Assembly: GCA_024679065.1 (NCBI GenBank)
Contig: JAGIQG010000009.1
Coordinates: 91,636,001 to 91,700,000, forward strand
Reading direction: 5' to 3'
DNA: 64,000 nt
Source of the DNA: Sphyrna mokarran
Lineage: Eukaryota
Part shown: piece after piece, positions 11,181-62,636 of the stretch
How the letters are laid out: each line of letters begins with the position of its first letter
Position numbering within the stretch: position 1 is the first letter of the stretch
Notes under the pieces: model-generated
Told to the model about the DNA's origin: nothing
The model's input: the letters and a program-made list of their open reading frames with translations, nothing else
The model's database searches: none
Translations under genes and position numbers: made by a program

Positions 11181-11322
11181 TATATCACATAATCTTTGAT
11201 ACGGTTCCAAAAAGTCTTCATCAAAATCCACAAACATTTAAAGACATTTAAAAATTTAAGCAATCAGAAAGTGAGAAAAGTGCACAAATTGTGAGTGTAT
11301 TTCATTCCCAACAATCTGTCCC

Positions 11323-11366
11323 TCAGTCACTCACTGGAGCTGTTGTGTACGTCCCACTTGGTGAAT
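11323..11366 (-). CDS. Gene B cytoplasmic exon ([14 protein letters not shown])
   Basis: Acceptor ttcacttctgcag; Tyr motif like class I exon 6. An internal gtgagt could act as an alternative donor. Confidence 0.7.
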
Positions 11367-14300
11367 CTGCAGAAGTGAAATAAATGTCAGTTAGAATGGG
11401 GAATAATCCATTCTCAGAGAGTGAGAACACAACAAGTGTGAGGGAATGGAGATTGTGTGAGAAATACTCATTCTCACACTCCCCTCCATCCTTACACTTT
11501 ATGGAGATCCTGTAGATCTCTTCCATTCCATCCATATTCAGTAGGTGAGGATGTGATTGTGTGCGGTGGCTTTAATGATCAATATTATACCTGGTCTGGG
11601 CTGTTCACACAAAGGAAAATCAGGCAGGGAACAAGATGTGTTTATACGTGTGTATCTGTGGATGGGAATTAAATCAGTTCATTCAACACAGTGTCCTGTA
11701 TTCCCAGTACTGGAGATTCCCCATACTCACTCTGTCCCCTCTGATTCTTACCTCTCCGCTGTCTTTTCCAGATGATTATTCCGAATATAACAACCAGTGC
11801 TGAGATCACTGATCCGATTATAATTCCAATATGGGACCATTCTCCACTGTTTCCCGGTATTTCTGAAACACATTTGAATAATATGAGGATTGTCTGTGTT
11901 CCCGGATCCATTCCCAATTCTATGTTCATTGGGGACAATTTGAACTGAAACCACCCCAGTCCAAATGGGATTGGTTGAAGCTTTGCTTTTACACTGGCCC
12001 CGTGGTGGATAAGGGAGTGTCTATGGATCTGCTCTGGATGGACTTCCAGAAGGTCATTGATAAAGTTCCACACAAGAGATTCTTGACAATAATCAGAGTG
12101 TTTGGAATTGAAGGGAATCTTTGTCAGGGGTGAAAATTGGTTGGCAGGAGAGAGACAGGGAATGGCGAGAATGGGAATGTGCTCCCATACAAACACATGC
12201 ACATATCCAGTACAGTTCCTTACCCCACTGATGGAGCTTGGGCTCTGCCAGGCTGCTGTGTTCAATTTGACAGGAGTATTGATCCTCATCCCCAGCATTT
12301 ATTTCAATCTCTTTCTGGATCTGATGGGTTCCATCGTGGCTTGGTCGAATCCCTGAGGATAGTGTCTCAGACATTACCTCTCCGTTCCTTAACCAGTTCA
12401 CCTCGATGTCTGCAGGATAAAAGCCAGTAACCAGGCAGAAGAGAGTGAGGAGCTTGTACTGACTATTGGGCTCACTTCTGGAGATGAACACTTCAGGCTG
12501 TACTGTAATGGGAAAGGGTGAAAACACAAACAATAAACCCACACTGAATGGAATGGGGGAACGGTTTGATAAATCAGTGAAGTTAGAGCAGAACATGGGC
12601 TCAGAACTGAAATCAGTACCTTTCCGTTCAAAATATTCCTTTCCAGCTTCCAAACATTCCTTCAAATGTCGAACAAATTCTCCCTGCAGATATTTTTCCC
12701 AGTAATTATTCCAGGATTGATCGGAATCCCATTTCTCTTTAGTCTTCACTGCGAAGTGATTGGATGCGACCCATCTCATTCTGTCTGGCTCTAAACTAAT
12801 ATAGTCCTTTCCATCGAATCCAAACCGCATCGATCTCTTAATGGAGCCGTCTTCAGTGACCTCGACAGACTGAATCCATTGGAAAATATGGATTCCTGTC
12901 AGAGAGCAAATGCTGATCAATATTCAGTGAACTGGAGGATTAGAAATATTGCTTTGTTAATCAATAAAGTGGAGAAATGATCTTTGTGATAGAATTGTCA
13001 GCAAAACTGAAATCCCTGGAATAAAATAAGCAGCATCAGAATGTAAACAAACTTGCCGAATGGATCGGAAACAGAGTGGCCAGGATTCTCCCAAAATAAT
13101 TCAACTGTCAAATTCGTTTGAAACCTGGAGTAAATCACGTTTGTTTTTACAGCGGGAGTTTCAAAATGAATCTCCCACAATCTGTACATTGCAGAGAGCA
13201 CGAGCAGGTTTCACACTGAAAAGCTGTCGGTGGGGCCTATTCCCGCTGGAGAGACTGACAGCAAAGTGCTGAGTGGGCCACTGCACATGTGCCAATCAGT
13301 CAGATTGGTGCATGCTCTGTCGCCCCTGTCTACCGGCCTCCCAATTTCCGGCTGGCTCGATCGCTGGTCAGTTCTGCAATTCCCACAACATTAGCCCCCC
13401 ACACAGCCCGATCTCTGGTCCCCTGAACATTCACGCACCATCTCCCATCCCTCCTGCCCTTCCAGCCCGCCCTAATCTCCAGTACCCTCTGATCCCACAT
13501 GCTCTTGACAATTACCCCTTCCCACAGTGCCAACCATTCCACACTCCGTAGTGCCAGCTCGCCCTCCCCCGTGTAAGGCAGCCCCACTACCCCCCACCCC
13601 CAGCGCGCTGACCCCACACCTACCCCGATGGCCAGCCCTGATCGTTGGCCTTCCTCCTTCCCCCATGATCCTCCATGGTGGCACAGTGGACAGTGAAGAA
13701 AGTTATCTCCAATTCGAATGGGATCTTGATCAATTGGGCCAGAGGGCTGACGAATGACAGATGGAGTTTAACTTAGGCAAATGTGAGGTGATGCATTTGA
13801 CCTCAACAGATCAAATCCACTGAAGAATGTGACTTCCTTCAGAAACTAAATAGGGATCAATAATCAATAGACAATCTTTTCAGTGGAGAAAGGGAATTTA
13901 GTCTGAGATAGAAATGGATGGAATCTTCCTCTGCCTTTAGAAATAAGAAGCTCAGCAGTGAGGTTACTAAATTAGATGGAGCCGGTGCTGGGAGACTGAG
14001 TTCAGTGTCCCAGGGGTCAGTGCTGGTGGGACTGAGTTCAGTGGCCCAGGGGTCAGTGCTGGGGGATGGACTGAGTTCAGTGTCCCAGGGGTCAGTGCGA
14101 GGGGACTGAGTTCAGTGTCCCAGGGGTCAGTGTTGGGGGACTGAGTTCAGTGGCCAGGGGTCAGTGCTGGGGGACTGAGTTCAGTGTTCCAGGGGTCAGT
14201 GCTGGGGGACTGAGTTCAGTGGCCCAGGGGTCAGTGCTGGGGGCTAAGTTCAGTGTCCCAGGGGTCAGTGCTGGTAGGACTGAGTTCAGTGGCCATGGGT

Positions 14301-17300
14301 CAGTGCTGGGGGACTGAGTTCAGTGTCCCAGGGGTCAGTGCGAGGGGACTGAGTTCAGTGTCCAGGGTCAGTGCTGGGGGACTGAGTTCAGTGGCCCAGG
14401 GGTCAGTGCTGGTAGGACTGAGTTCAGTGCCCAGAGGTCAGTGCTGGGGGACTGAGTTCAGTGGCCCAGGGGTCAGTGCGGGGGACTGAGTTCAGTGGCC
14501 AGGGGTCAGTGCTGGTAGGACTGAGTTCAGTGGCCCATGGGTCAGTGCTGGGGACTGAGTTCAGTGCCCAGGGGTCAGTGCTGGTAGGACTGAGTTCAGT
14601 GGCCCAGGGGTCAGTGCTGGGGGACTGAGTTCAGTGTCCCGGGGTCAGTGCTGGGGGACTGAGTTCAGTGGCCCAGGGGTCAGTGCTGGGGGACTGAGTT
14701 CAGTGGCCCAGGGGTCAGTGCTGGGGGACTGAGTTCAGTGGCCCAGGGGTCAGTGTTGGGGGACTGAGTTCAGTGTAAGGTTGTACATCAATACGCTGAT
14801 TCTCTCTGCCTGTTCTTACCGGATGTCTGGTTTGTGATCTTCAGCACTGTATTTAGATTCTCCTTTGCCGTGTCTGACCGTGAGTTCACCAGTTCTGTGA
14901 TATAATCCCAGAATTCAGATGTGATATTTTCAGCCATGAACCTCTGCCTGGGAATGCAGCGACGGATATTAGTGTCATGATATCGTACTTGGACACCATT
15001 GACCACTCCAATGCTTGTGACCTCAGGAAAATCTTCTATCCCAGAGACAACAGTGTATAACACTGTGAGTGTGTTAGTGTCTGTAAATGAAAGAGTTCAT
15101 AGGATTGGTTAATAAACACCGTCTGATCATTAGAACAGTCTCGCTGGACTTCAACATTCCTTCTCCCTCCCCACCCTGTCCCCAATCACTACCCCTACAG
15201 AGCCTCCCAAACACAATCCTTACTCCTGATCAACACCCCCTCTCCGAATCACTATCCTCTCTCCGATCACCAATTGTATCCCTTCCCCCTGATTACCCCA
15301 TTCCTTCCCTCAATTATCACCCCTTACCCTGATCACCACTTCCCTCACCAATCACCAACCCCCCCATCTGATCACCATCCTCTCTCCCATTACCACCCCC
15401 TCCCCGATTATCACCCCTTACTCCGATCACTACCCCCTCCGCCAATCACCAATCACAACCCCCTCCCCTAATCACCAACCCCTACACCCGATCACCATCC
15501 TCTTCCCGATTACCACCCTCCTTCTTAATTACCACCCACTCCCCAATCACCATCCCCTCCACCTCCTCCCAGTCACCACACCCTTTCACCCCGATCACCC
15601 CCCTTCCCAATCAACACCCCCTCAATCCACCCCCTCCTCTCAATCATCATCAGAGCCATTCCTCCTGAACACCACCCCAAATAGGCAGTGACATGGTCTG
15701 GAAGGCTGTGTAAGTGGTCGTCAGGCAGGAAGGGTCAGTGTCCATCCCATCCTGATATCGGTCCCGTCTGTTGCCCCTGCAATGTCGAGCCACCCGCCTG
15801 ACACTCTGCAGCCTCCCAGCACCCGGCCTCCAAGGATATTCCTCCAAACCCTCAGTCACCCCCACTCACAACCACAGACTGCCGAGGCACAGCCCTGATA
15901 AACCCACCCTATCACCTCACCCCCTACACCCTGTATCCTTCCAGCCATCAGATTTTCAATCCCTCCTTTATCCCCAAAGGATAAAGTGACCCATAAACAC
16001 CAGGATCATGTCAAGACTGCAGGTGGGGTTGCCGAGCTGCATCTCCTCACTATCTTTGAGGAGCACTATGGGGCTAGCAGGGAAGGGTGAGGAGGGAACG
16101 GTCACTGACAGCCAGGTCAGGGTTCATCATGGAAATGAGCATTTCCAAGACCCTCATTCAAATGACTCATTCCAGGTAAGTGGCATACTGCCCAGACACT
16201 TGTCCCTTTCTACTTTCCTTGTATTCTAATAGAATGCAAGGAAATTGGAAAGGAACTTCATCAAGGAATAAGGGGGGGCTAAAAGGGGTCACGCAAAAGC
16301 ACTGGCCAGCAGGATTAAGGAAAATCCCAAGGCTTTTCATACATATGTAAAGAGCAAGAGGTTAGCCAGGGAGAGGGTTGGCCCACTCAAGGACAAGGGA
16401 GGAAATGTATGTGTGGAGCCAGAGGAAATGGATGAGATATTAAATGAATACTTTGCATGAGTTTTCAACAAAGAGAATGACTTGGGGGATGATGAATCTG
16501 GGAAAGGATGTGTAGAAAATTTGAGTCATGTTGAGATCAAAAAGGAGGAGCTATTGGTTCTTGAGCGATATTAAGGTAGACAAGTCCCGAGGGCCTGATG
16601 GGATATACCCCAGAATACAGAGAGAGGCAAGGGAGGAAATTGCTGGGGCCTTGCGAGAAATCGTTGTATCCTCACCAGTTCCCCCCTCCCATCCTCCCTC
16701 ACTGGCTCCACACATACACAAAGGATTGGAGAATTGCCAATGTCGCTCCTTTGTTTAAGAAGGGTAGCAAGAATAATCCAGGTTATTACAGGCTGGATCA
16801 TCAGTGGCAGGGAAATTATTGGAGAGGATTCTTTGAGACAGGATTTATATCCACTTGGAAATAAGTAGACATATTAATGAGAGGCAACATGGTTTTGTGA
16901 AGGGGAGGTCATGTCTCACAAACTTGATTGAGTTTTTCAAGGAAGTGATGAAGATGATTGATGATATTGTAGCAAGAATAATCCAGGTTATTACAGGCTG
17001 GATCATCAGTGGCAGGGAAATTATTGGAGAGGATTCTTTGAGACAGGATTTATATCCACTTGGAAATAAGTAGACATATTAATGAGAGGCAACATGGTTT
17101 TGTGAAGGGGAGGTCATGTCTCACAAACTTGATTGAGTTTTTCAAGGAAGTGATGAAGATGATTGATGAGGGTAGGGCAGTGGATGTTGTCTACATGGAC
17201 TTCAGTAAGGCCCTTGACAGGATCTCACATGGCAGATTGGTGCAGAAGGTGAAGTCACATGGGATCAGAGATGAACTGGCAAGATGGATACAAAACTGGT

Positions 17301-20300
17301 TTGGTCAAAAACAGAGGGTAACAGTGGAAGGATGTGTTTCTGAATGGAGGGCTGTGACAAGTGCTGTTCCTCAGGGATCAGTGCTGGGATCTTTGCTGTT
17401 TGTAATATATATAAATGATTTGGAGGAAAAAGTAACTGGTTTGATTAGAAAGATTGCAGACGACATAAAGGTTGGTGGTTTTGAGGATAGTGATGAGGAA
17501 CATCAAAGGATACAGCAGGATATAGATCAGTTGGAGAATTGCACGGAGAAAAGGCAGATGGATTTTAATCTGGATAAATGTGAGGTAATACATTTTGGAA
17601 GGTCTAATACAGATAGGAAATATACAGTCAATGGCAGAACCTTTAAGAGTATTGACAGGCAAAGGGATCTGAATGTACAGGTACACAGGTCACTCACTGA
17701 AAGTGACAATAGAGATAGAGAAGGTGGTCAGGAAAGCAAATGATATGCTTGCCTTCACCGGACGTAGTATTGAGTTTAAAAACTTGCAAGTCATGTTGAC
17801 TATTTATAGAATCTTAGTTAGGCCGCACTTCAAATATAGTGTTCAATTCTGGTCACCACATTACCAGCAGGATGTGGAAGCTTTGGAGAGAGTACAGAAA
17901 AAATATACCAGGACGTTTCCAGATATAGAGGGCATTAGCTATGAGGGGAGATCGAGAAACTTGGTTTGTTCTCACTGGAACGACAGAGATTGAGGGGTGA
18001 CTTGATAGAAATGTACAAGATAATGAGAGGCATGGACTGAGTGGATAGTCAGAAGCTTTTTCCCAGGATGGAAGAGTCAATTACTAGAGGGCACAGGTTT
18101 AAGATGCAAGAGTTTAAAGGAAATGTATGAGGCAGATTTTTTTTTTTTACACACAGAGAGTAGTGGGAGCCTGGAACGTGTTGCTGGGGGAGGTAGTGGA
18201 AGGAGATATGTAGTAACTTTTAAGGGGCGTCTTGACAAGTATACGAATAGGATGGAAATAGAGGGATATGGTGTCGGAAACATAAGGGGTTTTAGTTCAG
18301 TCGGGCAGAATGATCAGTGCAGGCTTGGAGGGGCGAAGGGCCTGTTCCTATGCTCTAATTTTCTTTGTTCTCTTGACTGAACCTTGTGTTATCTGTTACA
18401 GGAAATGATCCAGATGCATTAAACCCTCCCACTCCGCTCCTCCTAAGATGCACAATGGCAGCTGGAAGAAAACCTCGGAGGAAGGCCCTGAGAAAATCGC
18501 CAAGCTCAGCATTTGTCAATTGACACCAGCTTCCACCACACAATCCACCAGCGCAGATACGATCAGCTCAGTGGGACAAGTTAGTGCTGAGGCTTCTGGG
18601 TCACTTACTGGTGGGGCACCACACAGTCTTTAATGTACATCGGGTGAAGGTGGGAATGTCGACGGTTCGGGCACACGGAGTTCTTCCAGAGCTAAGGATG
18701 CATCTGGCCCCAAGCCAAGTGCTAGGCCTCTGGGATCGGTCATCCCAAAACTGCTGGAGCTCCATCAGCAGCAACGGTGGAGGGACTGTCAGCAACACTG
18801 CATCAACTGTGAGGCTTTTGGAGGAATCTAACAGATTTCTGTCATAGGAGGTGGTACCGGTACAGTGTGGTACTCAGACTAACACTGCAAGGGTCGCATC
18901 CACAGTGGAAAGCCTGGGGTAAGGATTGGTCACCATGGTTGACAGGGTGCAGACCATCCTGGAGACACAGCCATGGCTGCGAGCCTCAACCTTGATCCAT
19001 TCTCAGGGGGCATCGCTGAGGGCTTGTACACCATGGGGCAGATGTAGTTGGGGATTCCAGGACTGACAGAGCCAGGTGATGCTGAGGCTTTTGGAGATGG
19101 CTCCAGCTGGCCCACCGTCCCATGGAGTATCCCCGGTACATATGGGCACACAGAGAGGAGGGAGGTTTGGAGCCCATGCTGGGGCCTTCCAGTCAGGAGA
19201 CATCGGACACTAGACCTTCTGATTGCATCTCCCACCCTTTCCTGACACTGGAGCATCTCACGGGCAGTGGGGTGAACAGGGTGGTATGGCTACACTAGTG
19301 TCATATGCAAGTCAGCCAGACACCTCCAGGTCTCAGCCTGCCCAGGGGTCTCCCACCAAGGGGATCACAGGCCACGGGGTGTGGAATGCAGTAGGATGTC
19401 TCCCCATCCAATGTGCATCCTGAGGAGTTACCCCGGTGCAGTAAAAGACCTTGTAAAATTCAGAAGTTCCAGTGTCATCAGGAGGGCGGAAGATAAGATT
19501 TGCTCTAGTCAGAAAAAGTTCACTCGACACTGTTTAGAATGACATACCCCTGTTATAGAACATAGAACATTACAGCGCAGAACAGGCCCTTCGATGCTGC
19601 GCCGACCAATTATGAAAAAAAAAGCAATGACCCTCCAAACTAAACCATTCCCTTCTCTTCCATAAACTTATCAACTTACTTCTTAAACGCCACCAAACTT
19701 GGCGCATCTACAACTGCCGCAGGCAGGGCATTCCACTCCCTAACCACCCTCTGGGTAAAGAGCCTACCTCTGATATCCGTCCTATAACTACCACCCCTTA
19801 ATTTAAAGCTGTGCCCCCTCGTGCTAGATTTCTCCATCCTAGGAAAAAGGCTATCACTGTCCACCCTATCTAAACCTCTAATCATCTTATATGTTTCAAT
19901 AAGATCCCCTCTTACCCACCTCCTTTCTAATGAAAACAACCTCAAATCCCTCAGCCTCTCCTCATAAGACCTGCCCTCCATACCAGGCAACATCCTGGTA
20001 AACCTCCTCTGTACCTCTCCAATGCCTCCACATCTTTCTTATAATGTGGGGACCAGAACTGCACACAATACTCCAAGTGCGGCCGCACTAGAGTTTTGTA
20101 CAGTTGCAACATGACATTGCGGCTCCGAAATTCAAACCCCCTACCACAATTATATCGCACAATTAAATATCATTCCTTCATGTTATTTGTACTGTTAGTT
20201 GCACCAAGAAATATTATTGCACCCCCAGCTGTGGCTAATCTTTCTGTGATTCCTGCCCTACAGGGATGACCGTATCCTGACCGCACACAAGGAGGGGCAG

Positions 20301-30444: not shown

Positions 30445-30610
30445 TCTGGGAATCCACTGTCTCAATTCCAATCAGTGACTGGGAATTAAACATTCCGAGG
30501 GTGAAACAACTTGATAAACTGGGGGAAAAACACGAAAAAACAAAAACTTTCTCCAGACTTCATTTTCCTGTCTAAATCGAGCATTTCCTTCTTGTAGAAC
30601 CAGAGGGTGA

Positions 30611-30701
30611 CTGATTGGTTAGTCTCAGAAAATTAACCAATGAAAGAGATAAACAGCCAGCCTGTCACTAGTTACCAGGAAGATCAAACTCACTCAGGTT
30701 C
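30611..30701 (-). promoter_or_regulatory. MHC S-X1-X2-Y module plus downstream CCAAT box of gene B
   Basis: Minus strand GAACCT-16 nt-CCTGGTAACTAGTGACAG..TTCATTGGTT..AACCAATCAG; order and spacing as in MHC enhanceosome promoters. Confidence 0.8.
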
Positions 30702-31027
30702 AGTCGGGAAGGCTTGCGAAAACTATACAAGGCACCAGTTAGACCACATCTGGAAAACTGTCCCCTTTAGTCCCCTTATCTAAGAGAAAATATACTAGCA
30801 TTGGAAGCAGTGCAGAGAAGATTCACTAGATTGAGCCCAGGTGTGGAGGGATTTTCTTATGAGGAGAGGTTGAGTAGATTGGGCCCGTACTCATTGGAGT
30901 TTAGAAGAATGAGAGTGAACCGATTCAAATGTATAAAATTCCCAGAGGGTTTGACAGTGTAGATGCTGAGAGGATGTTTCCCCCTGTGGGAAAGTCTAGG
31001 ACCAGACAGTAGAATCTCAGAGTAAGG
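30702..31027 (+). mobile_element. CR1 ORF2 internal fragment between the two leader exons
   Basis: LYKAPVRPHLENC..LEAVQRRFTRL..YEERLSRLG..SLEFRRMR. Confidence 0.85.
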
Positions 31028-31115
31028 TGTCACCCATTTCAAACTCTCACCAAAAGATTCAAATTCACCCCAGAGAGAGAGAGACTGAGAATGTCAGAGT
31101 GAATTCTGTACTTAC

Positions 31116-31167
31116 CGGGAGAGACCCAGGAAAAACACAGGGAGATGGAGAAAAGGATCAGCAACAT
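31116..31167 (-). CDS. Second (distal) intact leader exon upstream of gene B; orphan or alternative first exon
   Basis: Same 52-nt coding sequence and donor as 30393-30444, but upstream flank is of the gene A type. Confidence 0.65.
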
Positions 31168-31336
31168 TCTGGGAATCCACTGTCCCAATTCCAATCAGTG
31201 ACTGGGAATTAAACATTGGAAGGAGGAAACTAATATTGTTTATTGTGATCGGAAAACATAAAAAAAATGTTGATAAGGGCTCCAGTTGCCTGTCTTCATT
31301 AAAATGTGATCAGTTCCCTGATGTTAAGCCACACAG

Positions 31337-31558
31337 TAAGAATTTAGCAACACCAATTTTAAATCCAACCGATTTATTTGATAGTAAAATTGCGAGCTTT
31401 CAACACTCTGTTCTTCCTCAGGCAAATGCAGTGTTCTGCTCTGCAAGAGCACACATCAGCACAGACAGTCAGAGATTGCTGATTAGAATGCGAATCCTCA
31501 CATCTAACCTGCTATTCAAGTGTTAAAGTATGATGTATGATGATACGTCATACTTTAC
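31337..31558 (-). mobile_element. Penelope-like 3' fragment with hammerhead-like core, 14-bp TSD GTTAAGCCACACAG
   Basis: TSD at 31323-31336 and 31559-31572; empty site at 1202-1215; minus strand CTGAGGA-agaacagagtgtt-GAAA at 31421-31398. Confidence 0.78.
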
Positions 31559-36114: not shown

Positions 36115-36158
36115 TCAGTCACTCACTGGAGCTGTTGTGTACGTCCCACTTGGTGAAT
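36115..36158 (-). CDS. Gene C cytoplasmic exon
   Basis: Identical to the gene B exon. Confidence 0.7.
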
Positions 36159-54100: not shown

Positions 54101-54697
54101 TTCCTCTTTGGTACTACAAAGTACTTGGTTACAAAATCTCCTGTGTTATCTACAGCTCTGCCTGTCAATCTTTAATGGTTCCATATCTCCCAGAGTCACT
54201 CATTTACTGTTAATATATTTCTGTAAACTTTTACCATTGGTCTTTATATTACCTACACATTTTCACTGTGTCCTTTACCTCAATTTAATCTTTCTGTTCC
54301 TCCATCCTCCCCTCTGTTTCGGGACATTTCCACTTTAATTGCTCCAAGCTTTTCTGATCTGGGTATTTTGAACATACAAACATGGAGCAGGAGTAGGCCA
54401 TTCGGCCCCTCGAGTCTGCTCCGTTATTCTGTGGCTGATGTGATTGTGATCTGAACTCTACTTTCCTCTCAATCTCTCTGTACACTTTCACTCCCGTGTC
54501 AGTCATGATGTTATCTAACATTTATATCTGACAGATACATAATAACGTCTGAGTGAACATCACCCATTTCAAACTCTCACCAAAATATTCAAATTCACCC
54601 CAGAGAGAGAGAGAGTGAGAATGGGAGAGTGAATTCTGTACTTACCGGGAGAGACCCAGGAAAAACACAGGGAGATGGAGAAAAGGATCAGCAACAT
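36115..54697 (-). CDS. Non-classical MHC class I heavy chain, gene C (343 aa): exons 54697-54646, 39859-39599, 37737-37462, 37344-37066, 36684-36565, 36158-36115
   Basis: Same architecture as gene B; GT-AG phase-1 introns and an open spliced frame. Confidence 0.9.
36565..36684 (-). CDS. Gene C connecting peptide/transmembrane exon
   Basis: EIPENCGGNFNLGIIIGTVIPALAVIFGIIGIVIWKRQRR. Confidence 0.9.
37066..37344 (-). CDS. Gene C alpha3 (Ig C1) exon
   Basis: 279 nt; [27 protein letters not shown]. Confidence 0.95.
37462..37737 (-). CDS. Gene C alpha2 exon
   Basis: 276 nt; [46 protein letters not shown]. Confidence 0.95.
38803..39555. repeat. 35-bp G-rich minisatellite (~21 units) in intron 2 of gene C
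   Basis: Unit ggggactgag(t/c)tcagtgtcccaggggtcagtgctg. Confidence 0.95.
39599..39859 (-). CDS. Gene C alpha1 exon
   Basis: 261 nt; [46 protein letters not shown]. Confidence 0.93.
40430..46090. mobile_element. PIF/Harbinger fossil (unit 2 copy) with nested CR1 fragments
   Basis: Plus strand Myb/SANT-like TVWEAV..QRTG..QCQKRMNNLLWAGR at ~40455-40560; minus strand transposase remnant (ORF 44960..45382). Confidence 0.78.
47020..53500 (-). mobile_element. Near-full-length degenerate CR1 (unit 2 copy) with nested + strand CR1 (48067-50695), itself carrying a young CR1 tail (~48143-48400)
   Basis: Colinear with 23100-29300; ORFs 50683..50967, 52046..52306, 52838..53020 and 49164..49661. Confidence 0.88.
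53773..54026. mobile_element. Penelope-like pLTR-derived inverted repeat (unit 2 copy)
   Basis: Arms 53812-54027; CAGGAAAAAT direct repeats. Confidence 0.75.
54646..54697 (-). CDS. Gene C leader exon, [17 protein letters not shown]
   Basis: ATG, signal peptide and G|gtaagt donor. Confidence 0.88.
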
Positions 54698-54763
54698 TCT
54701 GGGAATCCACTGTCCCAATTCCAATCAGTGACTGGGAATTAAACACTCTGAGGGTGAAACAAC

Positions 54764-55010
54764 TTTATAAACTGGAGGAAATACATGTAAAAACAAAAAC
54801 TTTATCCAAACTCCATTTTCCAGTCTGAATCCACCATTTTCTTCTCGCAGAACCAGAGGGTGACTGATTGGTTAATCTTCTGAGACGATCCAATGAAAGA
54901 GATAAACAGCCGGCCTGTCACTAGTTACCAGGAGGATCAAACTCAGACAGGATCAAGTTCAGGCTGAAAAAAATCTAATCTTTCTCCAGCACCTTTCACA
55001 AAGTGAAACC
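54764..55010 (-). promoter_or_regulatory. Gene C promoter: ISRE-like, X1-X2, Y, CCAAT, TATA
   Basis: Minus strand GGTTTCACTTT (55010-55000), CCTGGTAACTAGTG (54932-54919), ATTGG (54894-54890), CCAAT (54871-54867), TATAAA (54769-54764). Confidence 0.78.
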
Positions 55011-55339
55011 TCCCCAAGGACAGCTTTATAAAGCAAAGATTGACCCAGAGACACACACAGCTCATTGCATAAAAACTGTCTCCAAATTCCAGGGTTGAAG
55101 GAGTGTTTTAAAGAGAGGCTGCAGAGAGGTGTAGGGAGGGATTGCAGAGTGAAGGACCGAGGTTACTGAAGGCACAGTCCCCAGTGTGGGGGAGATTCTA
55201 ATCCCTGAGACTGGAGATATCAGAATGAGAGGAACAGAGAGATCTCACCGAGTTTGTGAAACTGGAGGAGATTACAGAAATAGGATGGTGTGAGGACATG
55301 GAGAGATTTCAATTTTAAAATCCGGGCAGAGGGAATGGT

Positions 55340-55930
55340 GCCTTTAATTCAAAGAGAATGGAATATAAAAGGAGGGAAAACTATACAAGGCACCAGTTCG
55401 ACCACATCTGGAAAACTGTGGTCAGTTTTCGTCCCCTCATCTCAGGGAAAATATATTGGCATTAGAAGCAGTCCAGAGGAGGTTTACCAGGTTGACCCCA
55501 GGCATGGAGGCATTTTCTTTTGGGGAGAGGTTGAGTAGGTTGGGTCTGTACTTATTGGAGTTTAGAAGAATGACAGGTGACCTTATTGGGATATGTCAGA
55601 TTCTCAGGGGGTTTGACAGTGTAGATGATGAGAGGGTGTTTCTTCCTGTGGGAAAGTCTAAGACCAGAGAGCAGGATCTCAGAGTAAGGAGAGTTTCTTC
55701 TCTCAGTGTGTTAGTGTCTTTCTGCAATTCTTTACTGCAGAGGGCTGTAGAGGCTGGATCATTCAGTATGTTCAAGGTTGAGATAGATTGTTAATGAGTT
55801 AGTGAACGGGGGGTTATGGGGATAAGGTGGGAAAGTGGAGCTGAGTATTATCATATCAGGATCAGTCATGATCTCATTCAATGGTAGAGGTGACCTGATG
55901 GGCTGAATGGACTCCACCTGTTCCTATATC
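55340..55930 (+). mobile_element. CR1 3' fragment
   Basis: ORF 55456..55794 LEAVQRRFTRL..LEFRRMTGDLI. Confidence 0.85.
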
Positions 55931-56227
55931 TTCTATTTTATAGGTTGCTTGACTGGGAACTTACAGGTCAGTGAGCACAAATGTACCCAAGGAACACAGA
56001 GCCCAGTGTGAGGGTTCATAGTGTGAGCTATAAGAGCCTGAGGGATATTGACAGGATGGATGTGGAAAGGATGTATCCTCTTGTGGGAGAATCTAAAAAT
56101 CAGGGTCAGTATTTAAAATAAGGGGTTTCCTGTTTAAGACAGAGATGAGGAGAAATGTTTTCTCTGAGAGAGTCATAAAGCTCTGAAACTCTTTTCCTCC
56201 AGAGGCAATGGAAGCTTTGAATATTTG

Positions 56228-56515
56228 GCACAGTTGGTAGCACTGCTGCCTCACAGAGCCAGGGACCTGGGTTTGGGTTTCCCAGTTTGGGTCACTGTCT
56301 GTGTGGAGTTTGCAGATTCTCCCAGTGTTTGTGAGGCTTCCCTCTGTATGCTCTAGTTTCCTACCACAGTCCAAAAGATGTGCTGGTTGGGTGCAGTGAC
56401 CCCATGCTAAATTCTCCCTCAGTGCACCTGAACAGGCACTGGAATGCGGCGACTTAGGGCATTTTCAGAATAATTTCATTGCATTGTTAATGTAAGCCTA
56501 CTTGTGACAGTAAGT
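56228..56515 (+). mobile_element. HE1/V-SINE-type SINE
   Basis: ggcacagttggtagcactgctgcctcacag..gggacctgggtt..gtgtggagtttgca..ttctccc..ccatgctaaatt. Confidence 0.88.
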
Positions 56516-57110
56516 AAACTAACTTTTCTTTGGGAGAAGAAATTATATCTCAAATCTGTGTTAAATGATCATCCCCTTATTCTGTGACTCTGCTCTCTGA
56601 TTCTACACTCTCCCACGAGTGGAAACATTCTCTCAACATTTACCCTGTCTAACCCCCTCAGACTCTTAAATGTTTCAATCATATCACCGCTCATTCCTCG
56701 GAACTCCAAAGAGCACAGACACAATCTGTTTAATCTTTCCTCATATGGCAGTCCCTCTGTACCCAGGATCATCCTAGTAAACCTCCTCTGTACTGCATCC
56801 AGTGACAATATATTTCCTTAAATAAGGAGACCAAAACTGTGTGCAATATTGTAACTGTGGCCTCACTAATAGCTTGTATCTTGAAGGGGATGGGAGGTGC
56901 TGCTGAGGGAGGGTGGATGGCAGTGAGGGTGTTTAACTGGCTGCCCGGGGCTGGGATTTACAGGTGTGCACCTCCAATTCCAGCCCCGTCCCCGTGACAG
57001 CCACTCAGGCTCGCACTTCCTCACATGCTGACTCCCAAACGTGAGGCACCAACTGCTGCTGCGCGTGGCAGAACGACATCAGGCATTACGGGCTGGGTCT
57101 CCCCTTTATA

Positions 57111-57454
57111 GTAAGAAGTCTGACAACACCAGTTTTAAATCCAACCGATTTATTTGATAGTAAACTTGTAAGCTTTTGGCTCTATGGCCTTCACCTGACG
57201 AATACACATCTCTCTAACCTCAGTGCTCAGTGTTCCTTGCACTCACATTGTTAGCCACTTAAAGACTTGAATAGCAGGTTAGGTGTAAGGATTCGCATTC
57301 TAATCAGCAATCTGTAAACTGTCTGTGCTGATATGTGTGCTTTTGGAGACCAGAACACCTCATTCGTCTGACGAAGGCACAAACACCAAAAGCTAGCAGA
57401 TTTACTATCAAATAAATTGGTTGGATTTAAAATTGGTGTTGCCTGACCTCTTAC
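57111..57454. mobile_element. Penelope-like element fragment with inverted termini
   Basis: gtaagaagtc..aacaccagttttaaatccaaccgatttatttgatagtaaa at the left end and its reverse complement at the right end; same family as 31337-31558. Confidence 0.75.
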
Positions 57455-57514
57455 TGTTAGGCTTCTTTTTAGTCATGAAGGGGATGTGAAAATTACTGGC
57501 TAGGCCAGCATTTA

Positions 57515-57931
57515 GAACATAGAACATTACCGCGCAGAACAGGCCCTTCGGCCTTCAATGTTGCGCTGACCAATTAGGAAAAAGCAATGACCCTCCAAAC
57601 TAAACCATTCCCTTCTCGTCCATAAACTTATCTACTAACCTCTTAAATGCCACCAAACTTGGCGCTTCTACAACTGCCACAGGCAGGGCATTCCATACCC
57701 TAACCACCCTCTGGATAAAGAACCTACCTCTGATATCTATGCTATAACTACCACCTCTTAATTTAAAGCTATGTCCCCTGGTGCTAGCTTTCTCCATCCT
57801 AGGAAAAAGGCTATCATGTCCACCCTATCTAAACCTCTAATCATCTTATATATTTCAATAAGGTCTCCTTTAAGCCGCCTTCTTTCTAACGAAAACAACC
57901 TCAAATCCTTCAGCCTCTCCTCATAAAACCT
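57515..57931 (-). mobile_element. Young CR1 3' fragment with (TAGAACA)n tail, TSD GCATTTA
   Basis: Same subfamily as 19558 and 21648; direct repeats on both sides. Confidence 0.88.
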
Positions 57932-58834
57932 GCATTTATTGCCCCTCCTTCGTTGCCCTTTGCAATGCTGTTAGAGTGGGAGTTCCAAGATTTTGACCTA
58001 GTGACGGTGAAGGAACAACAGATATATTTCCAAGTTAAGGTGGTGTGTGGTGTTGAGTGGAACCTCCAGGTGTTCCCAAGTATCTGCTGTCCTTGTCCTT
58101 TAAGATGCTAGTGGGTTTGAAAGGTGCTGCCTGAGGAGCCTTGTGAGTTTGTGCAGTTAATCTTGTAGATGGTTTGCATGGTTGTCAGTGTGCATCAGTG
58201 TTGAAGGACTTGAATGCTTCTAGAAGGAGTCGCAATCAAGCAGACTGCTTTATCTTGAGTGGTGTCTGTTGGATTTCTTCAGTATCTTTGAAGTTACATT
58301 TATTCAAGCAAGTGGAGAGTATTCCATCACATAGAAACGTAGAAAGCAGAAGCTGGGGTAGGTTATTCAGCTACTCAAGATTGTTCTGCCATTGATTATG
58401 ATAAGGGCTGATCATCAAATTCAATATTTCTATCTCCCTTACCCCCCCATAATCCCTTGATCTCTTTAGCCCCAAAAGCTCCATTGAATTTTCTTGAAGT
58501 CAGACCACATTTTGGCCTCAACTACTTTCTGTGGTACCGAATTCCTCACATTCACCACTCTCTGGGTGAGAAATTTCTCCACACCTCAGTTCTTATCCTC
58601 AAACTATGACCTCTACTTATGGACTCTCCCACCATTTGGAACATTCTTTTTGAATCGACCCTGTTAGAATTTTATAAGTCTCAATGAGATCTCCTCTCTC
58701 CCTTCTAAGCTCCAGTGAATACAACCCTCACACTCCTGACTTGTGCCATGTAGATGGTGGACAGGTTTTGGGGAGTCAGGAGGTGAGTTACTCACTGCAG
58801 GATTCCTAACCTCTGAGCTGCTCTTGTAACGATG

Positions 58835-59380
58835 TGGAGATGCCGTTGTTGGTTTTGGGTAAAACACAAAAAAATCCCACAACACCAGTTGAAAGTCCAA
58901 ACAGGTTTATTTGTAGCAAAAGCCTCAAGCTTTCGGGACAGCCTGACCCTTCATCATGTGGCTGAGAGTTCTGATCGTAAAAATGACACAAAGTCACAAA
59001 CTCAATTTACATGCATAATGATTGGAATGTAAGGCTTTACAGCTGATCAATTCTTAAAGGTACAGACAATGTGAGTGGAGAGAGCTTTAAGCACTAGTTA
59101 AAGAGATGTGTATTGTTTCCCAGATAGGGAAGTTAGTGAAATTTTGTAAGTCCAGCCAAGTTGTAGGGGTTACAGATAGTGCGACATGAACCCAAGATCC
59201 CAGTTGAAGCTGTTCTCATATGTGCGGAGCTTGGCTAGCAGTTTCTGCTCAGCAACTCTGCGCCGTCTTATGTCATAAAGGCCACCTTGGAGAACGCCCA
59301 CCCAAAGATCAGAGGCCGAATGCCCATGACCACTGAAGTGTTCCCCAACAGGAAGAGAACAATCTTGTCTGGTAATTATC
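58835..59380 (-). mobile_element. Penelope-like element 3' end (GIY-YIG C-terminus plus pLTR with hammerhead-like core)
   Basis: Minus strand ..SLPVGEHFSGHGHSASDL..VLQGGL..RRRVAEQKLLAKLRT..DLGFMSHY; ATGATGA-agggtcaggctgtccc-GAAA near 58930-58958. Confidence 0.82.
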
Positions 59381-60844
59381 AGGCTTACCTCCTTTGGGGG
59401 ATAAAATTAAAGTCATAAAGGAAGTACCACAGCCAAAAAAATGTTTTGGAGTTAAAATTGTGCCCTGGAATGTGAATTGTTATGGCAGATTCATACAAAA
59501 CCAGGTGTTGAAGAATTGTTAGTCCAAGCCTGGATATTGTTCAGGTCTTGCTGCATTTTGGACATGGACTGCTTCAATATCTGAGAGACATAATGTAGCT
59601 GAACATTGTGCAATCATCAGTGAACATCCCCACTTCTGACATTATCATAGAAGGCAGGTCATTGATAAAACAAGTGAAGATGGTTGGGATTGGGATGCTA
59701 CCCCTGAGGAATTCCTGCAGTGATGCCCAGAGACTGAGATACTTGGCCTCCAACAACACAACCATCATTTTTTATGCTAGTTATGATTCCAACCAGTGAA
59801 AAGTTTTCTCTCAATACCCATTGTCTCCAGTTCTACTCTGGTGTCAGACTCAGTCAAATGCCACCCTGATGTCAAGTGCTATCACTCTCATCTCACCTCT
59901 GGAACTCAGCTCTTTTGTCCATATTTGAACCAAAGCTGTAATGAAGTTAGGAGCTGAGTGACCCCGGAGGAACCCAAACTGGGTGTCACTGAGCAAGTTA
60001 TTGCTAAATAAGTGCCTATTGATGGCCCCTTCCATCACTTTACTGATGATTAATTATAAACGGATGGGGCAATTATTGGTTAGGTTAAATTTATCCTGTT
60101 TTTAGTGTACAGCATATACCTGAGCAAATTTATACATTGTTGGGGAGTTGCCAGTGTTTTTGCTGAGACAGCTTGGCTAGGAGAGCAGCAAGTTCTGGAG
60201 CACAAGTCTTCAACGTTATTGCCAGATATTGTCCTTCCACACCAATACACTCACTTTGAGGTTCCCTACACTTCTCATTACTGAGAAGCTGGTGAGCCTT
60301 CACCTCCCGCTCACTGGGAAATGTGCTGAAGTTTGATTCTCTAAAGTTAGGACATGGCTTCCTCTCCTCTGTCTCTCACACTGACATCTTCAGTTAAGAA
60401 GTCAATCAATGCTAATGGAAAACAGTGAATGATGCTGACATTTAATCTGAACTCAGCCAGTTCACATTGGATTGAACATCAACAGCTGCCAATTCCAATC
60501 ATCACAAACTGCTGAGTGAATGAATTAAACCTTTCTTGTGAAATCAGTGAAGACAAATTCAGATAAATCAAACACAAAGAGTTATTTATTGATTACAATC
60601 CACAGTAATCAGGGTCACAGTGAAACATTGATTAAAGACTTCTCTCCATTAATAAATTATAGCTTAAAGCTTATTTATTTGGGTCACAAGAAAGCTTATA
60701 TTAACACAGCAATGAAGTTACTGTTAAAATCCCCCAGTTGCCACATTCCAGTACCTGTTTCTTTATACCGAGGGAGAACTTAGCATGGCCAAGTGCACCT
60801 GAGCAGCACGTCTTTTGGACTGTGGGAGGAAACCAGAGCACCAG

Positions 60845-61295
60845 GAGTCATAGACTCAGAGGTTCACAGCATGGAAACAGACCCTTCAGCACAACTTGTT
60901 CACACACCCAGTTTTTACTATTAAGCTAGTTTAGTCCATAGCCCTTGATACCAATCTTATTCTTGTAATGTCTAAGTGCTTTTTAAAAAACAAAATTGTA
61001 CTTGCCTCTATTACTTTTGGCAGCTGGTTCCAGCCACTCACTACCCTGTGTGTGAAAACATTGCCTCTCTCAATCCTTTTGTAACTTTCCCCTCTCATCT
61101 TAAACCTATGTCCCCTAGTCTTAGACTTCCTTACTTTTAGTAAAAGGACCATCTACATTATCTATGCCCCTCATTATTTTTACAGACTTCTGTAAGATCA
61201 TTCCTAAGCCTCCTATACTCCAGCGAAAAAAGTCCCAGTCTATCCAACCACTCCTTGTCACTCAAACCATCAAATCGCAGTAGCATCATAGTAAG
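60845..61295 (-). mobile_element. CR1 3' fragment nested in a V-SINE (~60690-61345)
   Basis: ORF 60931..61152 KTRGHRFK..FTHRVVSGWNQLP; SINE tail on the left, SINE head on the right. Confidence 0.75.
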
Positions 61296-62075
61296 TTCCT
61301 ATAGTCACACAGTAGTTAGCATTGCTGCCTCACAGCGCCAGGCAAAAGTGCATTTTTGAACACATCAAATATACGTATCAAAGTAAAGTGGACTGGTGTC
61401 TATCAATATAAAATCTGACATTCTATCGTGTTTGACTATACTCAGAATTACAATTTATATTAAAATTAATTTTTCAGCAGTCATTCACACTGAGAAATTT
61501 GATATGTTTTTCAGCCACTCCCTGTAACTATGATGGGAGGTCTTTCCCTATTGAGTGTCTCCAGTAACTGTCCCAAGCTGTGTCGTGTCCCTCACCAGTA
61601 TTCCTGGAACTTGCATTGTGACAATCTGAAACCCTCAGTCATGGAGAACCTTTTGCCCTGGAAGATCTGTTAGTTTCAGGCGGATTTTCATAGAGTTGAT
61701 GGTCCTCCAGCAGGAAGTGGTGTTTATCTCAGTGTGTGTTTCTGGGAATAGCCTGTACAGCATACAGTCCTGTATAAAGGAGCTGCTGGGATGAACATTC
61801 TGCGACTCCGTGGGAATTCATCAGATCAATATTCACTTTCCTTCATCCCACACAACTTAATAAGTGAAATGGAAAACTGCCCAGCACCAGAAAGATCTTG
61901 TCAATATTCTCATTGTCTTCTCCATTATTGGATTGCTCACAGAGTCTTTTACACTGAGTCCAAAAAGTCTTGATCAAAATCCGCAAACATTTCAAGATAT
62001 TTAAAACTCTGAATAATCAGAAAGTGAGAAAAGTGCACAAATTGTGAGTGTATTTCATTCCCAACAATCTGTCCC

Positions 62076-62636
62076 TCAGTCACTCACTGGAGCTGTTGTG
62101 TACGTCCCACTTGGTGAATCTGCAGAAGTGAAATAAATGTCAGTTAGAATGGGGAATAATCCATTCTCAGAGAGTGAGAACACAACAAGTGTGAGGGAAT
62201 GGAGATTGTGTGAGAAATACTCATTCTCACACTCCCCTCCATCCTTACACTTTATGGAGATCCTGTAGATCTCTTCCATTCCATCCATATTCAGTAGGTG
62301 AGGATGTGAGTGTGTGCGGTGGCTTTAATGATCAATATTATACCTGGTCTGGGCTGATCACACAAAGGAAAATCAGACAGGGAACAAGATGTGTTTATAC
62401 GTGTGTATCTGTGTGTGGGAATTAAATCAGTTTATTCAATACAATGCCCCGTATTCCCAGTACTGGAGATTCCTCACACTCACTCTGTCCCCTCAGTTCT
62501 ACATTCCCCTCTCTCTCATTCTTACCTCTCCTTTGACTTTTCCAGATGATTATTCCGAATATAACAGCCAGTGCTGAGATCACTGATCCGATTATAATTC
62601 CAAGATGGGAACGTCCCCCACTGTTTCCTGGGATTT
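62076..62636 (-). CDS. Non-classical MHC class I gene D, partial: TM exon 62636-62526 and cytoplasmic exon 62119-62076; upstream exons beyond the window
   Basis: [37 protein letters not shown] plus [14 protein letters not shown]; splice sites intact. Confidence 0.82.

Follow-up and report, generated by a model that had tools for sequence, protein, structure and literature searches.

Does a class I gene that has lost the disulfide bond of its alpha2 domain and most of its peptide anchors encode a maintained molecule, and to which lineage does it belong? The question is raised by a 64,000-nt stretch of the Sphyrna mokarran genome (assembly GCA_024679065.1, contig JAGIQG010000009.1, positions 91,636,001-91,700,000 of the forward strand; hereafter, the window), on whose minus strand lie two class I genes that are complete (B and C), the 3' end of another (D) and a leader-like exon of yet another (A). 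The exons of the window were analysed singly, and for full-length searches, structure modelling and tree building, database proteins (P0001 and others) served as stand-ins. Our overall reading, to which we assign a probability of roughly 0.78, is that the tandem copies in the window belong to a nonclassical class I family that is specific to sharks, expressed and devoid of the alpha2 disulfide, most likely UEA.

Two complete class I genes in a tandem array

Genes B and C share a one-domain-per-exon plan (leader, alpha1, alpha2, alpha3, transmembrane, short tail) with phase 1 introns, the first of about 15 kb. In gene B, the leader exon (30393..30444, minus strand, as are all exons below) begins with an ATG at 30444-30442, ends at a GT donor in phase 1 and matches P0001 by tblastn at 94% over 17 amino acids; an identical second copy of this exon lies at 31116-31167. 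The alpha1 exon (14820..15080, 261 nt) aligns with Pfam MHC_I positions 4-90 (E 5.8e-07), the alpha2 exon (12620..12895, 276 nt) contains a 91-residue MHC_I domain (PF00129, E 1.5e-16), and the alpha3 exon (12224..12502, 279 nt) contains a C1-set domain (E 9.7e-17) with both of its cysteines. These are followed by an exon for the connecting peptide and transmembrane segment (11752..11862; tblastn, 86% to P0001 residues 290-325) and a cytoplasmic exon (11323..11366; tblastn) closing with TGA at 11325-11323. The corresponding exons of gene C are a leader (54646..54697; tblastn, donor checked), alpha1 (39599..39859; tblastn, 73% to P0001), alpha2 (37462..37737) and alpha3 (37066..37344), both with Pfam domains, a 120-nt transmembrane exon three codons longer than that of gene B (36565..36684; tblastn) and a cytoplasmic exon with the stop codon (36115..36158; tblastn). 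Matches to PF00129 on alpha1 and alpha2 (the latter down to E 8.4e-19) and to PF07654 on alpha3 (E ~1e-16) identify both as class I heavy chains. Every exon boundary has AG/GT in phase 1, all 10 splice junctions are intact, and the exon sums (1023 nt in B, 1032 nt in C) are multiples of 3 that end in TGA, with no frameshift or premature stop; both genes are thus intact, as an earlier, sequence-only reading of the window had held.

That reading had also described a tandem family, and the genes do lie in direct repeats (11205..62257) with a unit of 24.2-25.0 kb. Identity between copies is 94-99% in the best 300-nt blocks, and for the introns that lie from alpha1 to alpha3 it is 91-94%. With two complete and two partial copies in the window, the family is multigene. 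The leader-like exon of gene A (997..1044, minus strand; tblastn) has ACA in place of the ATG of the other copies, and the remaining exons of this gene would fall before the window start. Gene D is present as its 3' part only (62076..62636, minus strand), with a transmembrane exon at 62636-62526 and a cytoplasmic exon at 62119-62076, and its likeness to gene B ends at 62961, just ahead of the expected alpha3 site. The long introns also contain six repeat-like ORFs, none of which matched a Pfam family. Short matches to 'IHIIQWI' (20860-20880 and 45197-45217) and 'DTAWDSYW' (10701, 35536 and 61498) were also recorded, which may be due to chance (E in the range 1.6-5.9).

The leader of gene A without its ATG and the interrupted homology of gene D suggest a different explanation for the whole array: the copies might be young pseudogenes or decaying duplicates, in which the loss of cysteines and the anchor changes represent damage, not design. 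However, neither B nor C bears the stops, frameshifts or broken junctions of a decaying gene, and transcription provides further evidence against decay.

Spliced transcripts

Four public runs from three studies, which we presume to be RNA, yielded contigs that cross the junctions of gene B, a check that the sequence-only reading had proposed. The joint between the cytoplasmic and transmembrane exons (11366>11752) is present in contigs of all four runs, that between alpha3 and alpha2 (12502>12620) in three (X1, X3 and X4), and that between alpha2 and alpha1 (12894>14819) also in three (X1, X2 and X3); joints between the transmembrane and alpha3 exons of gene B every time end at 12224. The joint ends match the predicted splice sites of three gene B introns (plus-strand CT..AC, hence GT..AG in the direction of the gene). 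Contigs with a likeness of 90-95% could derive from paralogues or other species, and run X1 contains pieces without a single mismatch on gene B alpha2 (12620-12753) and alpha1 (14824-15038). Because contigs skip gene B introns at the predicted splice sites, spliced transcripts exist, and their mismatch-free pieces count against the copies being defunct.

Loss of the alpha2 disulfide and of peptide anchors

In gene B, the position of C101 is occupied by Val (codon 12866-12864) and that of C164 by Phe (codon 12677-12675): In a HMMER alignment with PDB class I chains, 'gce' faces 'sve' and 'tci' faces 'efv'. In gene C the two residues are Ala and Phe, so the substitutions previously read from the window hold in both genes, with Phe in C as well. 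Both genes retain the alpha3 Cys pair, the N86 sequon (N-Q-T), H93, Q96, D119, D122, T143, K146 and W147.

Classical class I molecules hold the peptide termini with Y7, Y59, Y/R84, T143, K146, W147, Y159, W167 and Y171. A hand alignment to HLA numbering gave the same substitutions in B and C as had been listed before (Y7>V, Y59>F, 84>I and W167>H, with Y in B and H in C at 159, and C in B and Y in C at 171); the retained residues named above, the WNNYW motif of the alpha2 helix and W97 had likewise been read correctly.

The same features recur across the family. Among the 232 of 322 proteins with 240 or more of the 272 ectodomain positions covered, Cys at 101 occurs in 0 of 69 family ectodomains, and both alpha2 cysteines occur in 162 of the 163 class I ectodomains from outside the family, the lone exception being an alignment gap at position 164. 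The bond is therefore near-invariant outside the family, as had been assumed, and with such a partition its loss is not a matter of chance. Judged from these alignments, the loss of the cysteines is a lineage-wide synapomorphy and not peculiar to the copies in the window. Other positions are fixed or nearly so within the family (M114, W147 and W156 in 69/69, W152 in 68/69), and the residues of the A pocket are dismantled: position 7 is V in 44/69, R84 is kept in 15/69, Y59 in 27/69 and Y171 in 47/69. T143, K146 and W147 are retained. The complete anchor set of classical UAA-type molecules is thus absent from B, from C and from the family at large, as is the disulfide. Residues that contact beta2-microglobulin are conserved among homologues that nearly fully cover the respective exon (78/83 for alpha1, 80/94 for alpha2 and 83/89 for alpha3): Q96 in 80/80, D119 in 78/80, D122 in 79/80 and W60 in 78/78.

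Selection on the paralogues

The coding differences between B and C are unevenly distributed, with dN/dS values of 0.29 in alpha3, 0.77 in alpha2 and 1.24 in alpha1. A value near 1 in alpha3 had been named as a sign of pseudogenes, and the value obtained argues against decay: By this pairwise measure, alpha3 is under purifying selection, and alpha1 and alpha2 are diverging between the paralogues. The values for alpha1 and alpha2 are those on which the case for decay draws, together with a Leu in gene C alpha1 at the position of W60, which is Trp in all 78 homologues; this Leu and the alpha1 dN/dS above 1 could reflect decay instead of diversification. However, the cysteine loss is common to 69/69 family ectodomains, from species of both shark superorders, and because it is common to all of them, it is old and maintained. 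We therefore consider it highly improbable that the copies are simply decaying, and favour an expressed and maintained family.

A deep, shark-only lineage

Our homologue search returned 94 matches, of which 93 are named and come exclusively from sharks (13 species), with one unnamed JGI match lacking a species. No family member from rays or chimaeras was among the 93 named matches in the databases searched; their class I proteins fall in other clades. The 13 species each have 1-16 clusters at 90% identity (isoforms counted), and identity is 55-88% within the family vs 26-42% for the next full-length proteins listed (query P0001). All family rows form one clade with support of 100, whose stem measures some 0.6-0.7 substitutions per site, both in a FastTree tree (69/69 rows; 161 of 238 proteins, selected with the coverage minimum given above) and in a quick IQ-TREE tree (30/30 rows; 70 rows chosen by hand, 30 from the family and 40 others). 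This clade is apart from UDA-like, UAA/UBA-like and 9CH4-like lineages, and the UAA/UBA-like proteins, which retain both alpha2 cysteines, form a clade of their own (support 99-100). The labels 'bony1-8' in the IQ-TREE tree are guesses, and P0096, P0132 and P0146 among them fell inside the UAA-like clade.

The proposal of an expanding nonclassical lineage is therefore borne out by a deep, shark-only and multicopy clade, in trees built on database stand-ins. Its novelty fared less well: the sequence-only reading had conceded that a sublineage already known to lack these cysteines would remove it, and the loss is in fact shared by all of a lineage for which 13 shark genomes already carry annotations. 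The genes in the window are real but not of a new kind; they are two more paralogues of an annotated lineage.

Assignment to UEA

The abstract that described UEA reportedly presents it as a shark-only lineage with three sublineages, related to UCA, with a hydrophobic groove and with all nine peptide-terminus residues not conserved; UEA is also said to have been described in part from nurse shark. The restriction to sharks reported for UEA holds for 93/93 named matches here. Passages on sharks in PMC12562908 report two expanded MHC-Ib families and derive UBA from UAA; those on UEA there and in PMC10751288 describe it as multicopy, older than UBA and grouped beside the adaptive MHC with UDA, a single-copy gene. 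In the same passages, genome-wide searches name only UDA, UEA, UBA and UFA, with UGA added in a later review (PMC12562908, PMC10751288). Since the published searches list only these, a family with up to 16 clusters per genome is not one that they would have missed.

Two observations connect the family with UDA. Its leader peptide is identical to the UDA-like leader, and family members and the UDA-like gene occur on contigs of equal size in Mustelus, Chiloscyllium punctatum, Heterodontus and Hemiscyllium, which we read as the same chromosome in these four species. Other named lineages fit poorly. UBA was rejected because family and UAA/UBA-like proteins group in distinct clades (support 100 and 99) and identity outside the family is 26-42%. 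CD1-like UFA/UGA are described as single or low copy, present in sharks and rays, and lipid-binding with a very hydrophobic groove (personal communication in the passages of PMC12562908 on them); we rejected these as well, the family being multicopy, shark-only, of low groove index (0.24, see below) and apart from the 9CH4-like clade, which we suspect, as a guess, to be UFA or UGA.

By elimination, the family (multicopy, shark-only, ancient and sharing its leader with UDA) most likely corresponds to UEA as described in publications; no protein named UEA was among the database matches. It might instead be UBA or a lineage that is annotated but was never described, in keeping with the generic names of its RefSeq and UniRef entries ('F10 alpha chain-like'), none of which is a lineage name, and with the absence of nurse shark family members from the homologue search, even though the same database holds a nurse shark UDA-like entry. 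We regard this as unlikely: UBA derives from UAA (PMC12562908, in its account of UBA) and the UAA/UBA-like clade keeps the cysteines that the family lacks, full-length proteins outside the family are too distant, and the leader shared with UDA, like the chromosome as read from contigs in four species, is as expected of UEA. Of the two placements previously offered, UEA/UCA-type or a distinct sublineage, the UEA part thus stands as the most likely and an unpublished sublineage is disfavoured. A literature search on UEA features and the C101/C164 disulfide found no statement of a shark lineage without alpha2 cysteines; the 'UEA' of PMC9138301 is a lectin.

Fold, groove and possible ligands

An AF2 model of the relative P0001 (pLDDT 84.8) has a TMt of about 0.9 to class I structures. 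Because Foldseek did not tell classical neighbours of this model from MR1 and YF1 ones, the fold is uninformative on the ligand. Without the disulfide, the alpha2 helix may be joined to the sheet by hydrophobic packing, for which V101 against L/F/Y164 are candidates; M114, W152 and W156, all invariant in the lineage, and W97, which is common, are possible partners. Since Q96, D119, D122 and W60 are kept, beta2-microglobulin is predicted still to be bound.

The N-terminal anchor network would be gone, through Y7>V and the loss in most members of Y159, W167 and R84, and the C-terminal triad T143/K146/W147 would remain, so that presentation of ordinary 8-10-mer peptides in the classical mode is improbable. 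Peptide binding as such is still possible because the triad, often Y171 and sometimes Y59 are kept. The ligand may have an N-terminal end that is modified or free of anchoring, or it may not be a peptide, or the molecules may directly be receptor ligands; paralogues may have been tuned differently through duplication and helix divergence. The loss of the A pocket across the family with the triad kept is consistent with the remodelled groove and probably non-canonical ligand that had been proposed from the window.

Lipid or lipopeptide presentation, as by CD1 or chicken YF1*7.1, is one such option, with an acyl chain held on the remodelled hydrophobic A-pocket side. Y7>V, Y59>F, the lost Y159 and W167, the invariant M114, W152 and W156 and the frequent L/I/V/M along the alpha1 helix would suit it, and YF1*7.1 lipid complexes appear at Foldseek ranks 31-48 (TMt ~0.9). 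However, two classical molecules, BF2 of chicken and UAA of shark, rank equally or better, and no canonical YXX-hydrophobic sorting motif was read in the tail. A crude hydropathy index of the groove (from a hand alignment and a list of pocket positions, with 152-156 uncertain by one residue) is 0.24 for the family, 0.15 for UAA-like and 0.83 for 9CH4-like proteins; because the family lies slightly above the former and below the latter, a strongly hydrophobic groove is not evident, and lipid presentation seems distinctly unlikely. Within the non-canonical groove that we favour, we offer one speculation, as a long shot: V101, L/F164, M114, W152 and W156 might form a staple in a disulfide-free platform hundreds of millions of years old, whose folding would be independent of redox and of tapasin/TAPBPR control, and whose groove, with T143/K146/W147 but no A pocket, would bind N-terminally extended or N-acylated ligands, one per paralogue.

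Implications and comparison with known systems

Quality control by tapasin/TAPBPR in mammals needs C101-C164. In human HLA-A2, mutating this bond abolishes TAPBPR binding, according to the passages of PMC6926029 that treat it. A lineage without the alpha2 bond since before the split of the shark superorders implies that the class I fold can be stabilised otherwise, and allows chaperone-independent folding, and the ligands of nonclassical class I in the oldest jawed vertebrates, to be approached by comparison. The practical yield of the window is an exact gene model, evidence of expression (from runs presumed to be RNA) and the placement of two paralogues.

The closest likeness is to UEA (Almeida et al. 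2021, J Immunol 207:824), which is also multicopy, ancient and found in sharks, with most peptide-terminus residues reportedly not conserved; its place in an MHC-Ib cluster with UDA (as outlined in parts of PMC10751288 and PMC12562908) may be shared too, to judge from equal-sized contigs in four other species. T143, K146 and W147 are conserved in the family, against the nine residues reportedly not conserved in UEA, and otherwise we found nothing contradictory. UDA-like proteins (P0115; P0259, the latter an nr entry named 'nonclassical MHC class I antigen [Ginglymostoma cirratum]' within that lineage) resemble the family in their identical leader, nonclassical nature and, as read in four species, chromosome. 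However, UDA-like genes are essentially single-copy, occur in sharks, rays and a chimaera, retain the alpha2 cysteine pair as well as an alpha1 of the GSHSLRYYYT type, and are 34-37% identical to P0001. Among solved structures in the PDB, none is a close match for the family: chicken BF2 scores best (E 7e-50), and shark UAA (6LUP) has E 5.5e-41 and 31% identity. With these classical molecules the family shares its fold (TMt 0.88-0.92), exon plan, N86 sequon, beta2-microglobulin contact residues and T143/K146/W147 triad, but it lacks the alpha2 disulfide, has lost Y7, R84, Y159 and W167, and is tandem and multicopy. In this last respect it is like Xenopus XNC (mhc1-uba), another large, tandem and oligomorphic MHC-Ib family with divergent grooves (as sketched in the relevant part of PMC12562908), although the two lineages are unrelated.

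Two complete genes without an alpha2 disulfide

The sequence-only reading had proposed that genes B and C, the two complete class I genes of the window, lack the C101-C164 disulfide of alpha2 (HLA numbering) along with several conserved groove residues, and every part of this reading was confirmed; the feature is genuine and was well described. Pfam assigns the alpha1 and alpha2 exons to MHC_I and alpha3 to C1-set. When alpha2 of B was aligned to solved class I chains with HMMER (residues 93-181 of the HLA-A68 chain 1hsb_A pairing with alpha2 exon residues 2-90), 'sve' stood opposite 'gce' and 'efv' opposite 'tci', replacing C101 by Val (12866-12864) and C164 by Phe (12677-12675); the corresponding residues of C are Ala and Phe. 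The alpha3 cysteines, an N-Q-T sequon, H93, Q96, D119, D122, T143, K146 and W147 are kept. A hand alignment to HLA numbering, which required a single deletion ahead of residue 116 and a single insertion in the 147-159 interval, recovered Y7>V, Y59>F, Ile at 84, W167>H, Tyr or His at 159 and Cys or Tyr at 171, as well as W97 and the WNNYW motif. Residue 42 of B alpha1 (14955-14957) is a lone Cys aligned to HLA residue 45 and is also Cys in C; this column holds Cys in 27, Thr in 15, Met in 13 and Ile in 10 of 78 family sequences, such that Cys is common there but not fixed.

Gene models and tandem duplication

All class I exons of the window (G+C 41-56%, with a single N run at 3629-3762) lie on the minus strand, and the region is a tandem duplicon whose direct repeats recur at a spacing of 24.2-25.0 kb with 94-99% identity in 300-nt blocks. 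Exons were located by tblastn with two kinds of query, the alpha2 and alpha3 translations of the window itself and P0001, a Mustelus family protein, after which their boundaries were read. Gene B comprises a leader (30444-30393), alpha1 (15080-14820), alpha2 (12895-12620), alpha3 (12502-12224), TM (11862-11752) and a tail ending in TGA (11366-11323), and gene C a single leader (54697-54646), alpha1 (39859-39599), alpha2 (37737-37462), alpha3 (37344-37066), TM (36684-36565) and tail (36158-36115). AG and GT flank each internal exon of both genes, and all junctions are in phase 1. Exon lengths sum to 1023 nt in B and 1032 nt in C, both multiples of three, a reading-frame check made on length sums only, with exons handled singly and without a joined protein. 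Gene B has a second, identical leader at 31167-31116, 723 bp from the first, and both have ATG and a GT donor.

Two further copies are partial. Gene D is represented by its TM (62636-62526) and tail (62119-62076) exons only, both on the minus strand; its likeness to B ends at 62961, just before the expected alpha3 site, and the sequence from there to the window end at 64000 is unique. In the leader-like exon of gene A (997-1044, minus strand), which is 75% identical to the family leader, ACA replaces ATG; this exon would come from a copy that otherwise lies ahead of the window start.

Between alpha1 and alpha3, the introns of B and C are 91-94% identical. The alpha1-alpha2 introns of both genes (13780-13870 in B, 38610-38686 in C) contain a decayed partial alpha2 copy, made up of the acceptor and ~15 initial codons and containing an in-frame stop; because it is present in both introns and is 74% identical to 12857-12926, it is older than the B/C duplication. 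Just downstream of B alpha1, this intron of B holds a minisatellite (13985-14775; 35-bp unit, 22.7 copies, 89% matches). The first introns, of ~15 kb (15100-30390 and 39900-54640), are full of repeat-like open frames, and no Pfam family was detected in the six of these that were scanned.

Transcription and selection

Seven sequencing runs were listed, five of them containing part of the sequence, and none is recorded as RNA. Logan contigs of four of these five, from three studies, which we only guess to be RNA, were mapped to 11300-15100, a stretch that runs from alpha1 to the tail, with the leader-alpha1 junction outside it. Contig depth was high over the five exon blocks and fell to low values or zero across introns. 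Contigs skip 11366>11752 in four of four runs and both 12502>12620 and 12894>14819 in three of four, and the skipped ends, CT..AC on the plus strand and hence GT..AG on the gene strand, match the predicted junctions exactly. Joints between TM and alpha3 all end at 12224, where the alpha3 boundary was predicted, and vary on the TM side, as expected if paralogues with differing connecting peptides were assembled. Contigs at 90-95% likeness may stem from paralogues or other species. One public run (X1) yielded mismatch-free pieces on B alpha2 (12620-12753) and alpha1 (14824-15038), which makes it most likely that the transcripts include B itself or a copy identical to it. Between 13586 and 13839 all four runs show contig depths in the hundreds to thousands and numerous loose ends, and this segment is probably an expressed interspersed repeat in the intron, outside the gene proper.

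Substitutions between B and C, counted by the Nei-Gojobori method, differ by domain: alpha3 has 8.0 nonsynonymous and 7.0 synonymous differences (dN/dS 0.29), alpha2 has 14.0 and 4.0 (0.77), and alpha1 has 22.5 and 5.5 (1.24). The low ratio in alpha3 against the higher ratios in alpha1 and alpha2 indicates that the Ig domain is constrained and that the platform is diversifying or under relaxed constraint, states that a pair of genes cannot separate. Gene C itself could be on its way out: its alpha1 (39599-39859) has Leu at the HLA W60 position, which is Trp in gene B and in 78 of 78 homologues, and the alpha1 dN/dS exceeds 1.

A shark-wide family

We searched for relatives with a word-indexed search that scored the alpha2 exon only, inside a 276-codon frame (12096-12923) that lets full-length proteins pass the length filter. 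It returned 94 proteins, the closest from Mustelus asterias (89%). All 93 with a species name are from sharks (besides Mustelus asterias, these are Carcharodon, Cetorhinus, two Scyliorhinus species, Stegostoma, two Chiloscyllium species, Rhincodon, Hemiscyllium, Heptranchias, Heterodontus and Pristiophorus) and the remaining one is an unnamed JGI protein; there were 1-16 clusters per species, isoforms counted. No ray or chimaera member appeared among the 94, nor did a nurse-shark member, though nurse-shark UDA is in the database. Across 80 alpha2 homologues the C101 column holds Val in 74 and Ala, Ile and Leu in two each, with no Cys, and the C164 column Leu in 27, Phe in 20, Tyr in eight and Cys in eight. 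The alpha3 cysteines are kept in 83 of 83 and 81 of 83 homologues, and the alpha1 sequon in 78 of 78.

Identity to P0001 falls from 55-88% within the family to 26-42% in the next full-length proteins (exhaustive HMMER search, 1.84 billion representatives), and in an alignment of 232 ectodomains, both alpha2 cysteines are present in 162 of 163 non-family sequences, the exception being a gap at 164. FastTree (161 rows) recovered the family as one clade with support of 100 and a stem of 0.6-0.7, as did an IQ-TREE quick search with a mixture model on 70 chosen rows. Trees of the single exons place B and C nearest or near-nearest to each other, beside the Mustelus proteins P0001 and P0002, which makes a carcharhiniform shark other than M. 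asterias the probable source. In the 70-row tree, some sublineages contain Heptranchias and Pristiophorus sequences side by side with those of galeomorph sharks, which belong to a different superorder; on this assignment, the lineage and its loss of the cysteines are older than the divergence of the two superorders. Disulfide loss is common to the whole family (Cys at 101 in 0 of 69 ectodomains). What interest remains attaches to a platform that lacks the disulfide, provided that earlier literature has not covered it.

A remodeled groove

Compared with the 163 non-family ectodomains, the 69 family ectodomains mostly lack several of the residues that hold the peptide termini. Position 7 is Val in 44 (Tyr in 122 non-family sequences), R84 is kept in 15 (131), Y159 in 14 (131), Y59 in 27 (122) and Y171 in 47 (89), and W167 is replaced by His in 19, Arg in 18 and Tyr in 11 (Trp in 131). 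T143 is present in 52 (118), K146 in 62 (116) and W147 in all 69 (146). M114 is invariant in the family (Asp, Arg or Leu elsewhere), as is W156 (19 of the non-family sequences), and W152 occurs in 68 (Leu, Met or Asp elsewhere), with positions 152-156 uncertain by one residue.

We propose that V101, Leu, Phe or Tyr at 164, and a cluster of invariant Met and Trp residues beneath the alpha2 helix would stand in for the disulfide in holding helix to sheet, and that beta2m binding is predicted to be retained. At the A-pocket end the clamp on a free peptide N-terminus would be gone; the C-terminal clamp may still function, and variable helix positions could give each paralogue its own ligand or receptor specificity. 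Retention of T143, K146 and W147, often with Y171 and Y59, would leave room for peptide binding. In human HLA-A2, mutation of C101-C164 is reported to abolish TAPBPR binding (PMC6926029), and by analogy, and speculatively, the bond-less family may fold outside that editing route.

A confident AF2 model of P0001 has a class I fold (pLDDT 84.8, >90 for 250 residues). Its Foldseek neighbors include chicken BF2 (TMt ~0.9), shark UAA (6LUP, rank 22), YF1*7.1 and MR1, at about the same level for classical BF2 and UAA, lipid-binding YF1*7.1 and MR1, so the fold does not tell ligand types apart. Scored by a crude hydropathy index at 35 mapped positions of the groove, the family (0.24) is not strikingly hydrophobic; UAA-like proteins score 0.15, UDA-like -0.68 and 9CH4-like, the most hydrophobic, 0.83.

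Placement among shark class I lineages

Beside the family, our trees contain three other class I clades of cartilaginous fish. The UDA-like clade, found in sharks, rays and Callorhinchus, is essentially single-copy in each species, keeps its cysteines, and includes P0259, an nr entry named 'nonclassical MHC class I antigen [Ginglymostoma cirratum]'. The UAA/UBA-like clade, which holds Squalus acanthias Q8HWH7, has a GSHSLRYF-type alpha1 and likewise keeps its cysteines. The Pristiophorus member of the third, P0140, matches PDB 9CH4 ('Ig-like domain-containing protein') at E 1e-138, and we guess that this lineage may be a CD1-like UFA/UGA lineage. UDA-like proteins (P0115, P0118, P0259) have a 17-residue leader peptide identical to that of the family, paired with a classical-looking alpha1 and an intact alpha2 disulfide; the common leader suggests that exons are shared or converted among Ib-cluster genes, or that some gene models took their leader from a neighboring gene. 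Family and UDA-like genes lie on equal-sized contigs, which we read as the same chromosome, in Mustelus, Chiloscyllium punctatum, Heterodontus and Hemiscyllium.

Elasmobranch MHC-Ib genes are reported to map to the MHC in all cases, with a separate cluster holding UBA alone, in multiple copies (PMC10751288). Two expanded shark families have been described, the older UEA and UBA, which derives from UAA, with UDA, UFA and UGA being single-copy in sharks (PMC12562908). No protein named UEA turned up in any database search made, and the family is placed by elimination: deep, multicopy, shark-only, sharing leader and chromosome with UDA and far from UAA, it is most likely UEA. The disulfide loss is a lineage-wide trait of a described and widely annotated shark MHC-Ib family, not a peculiarity of this locus.
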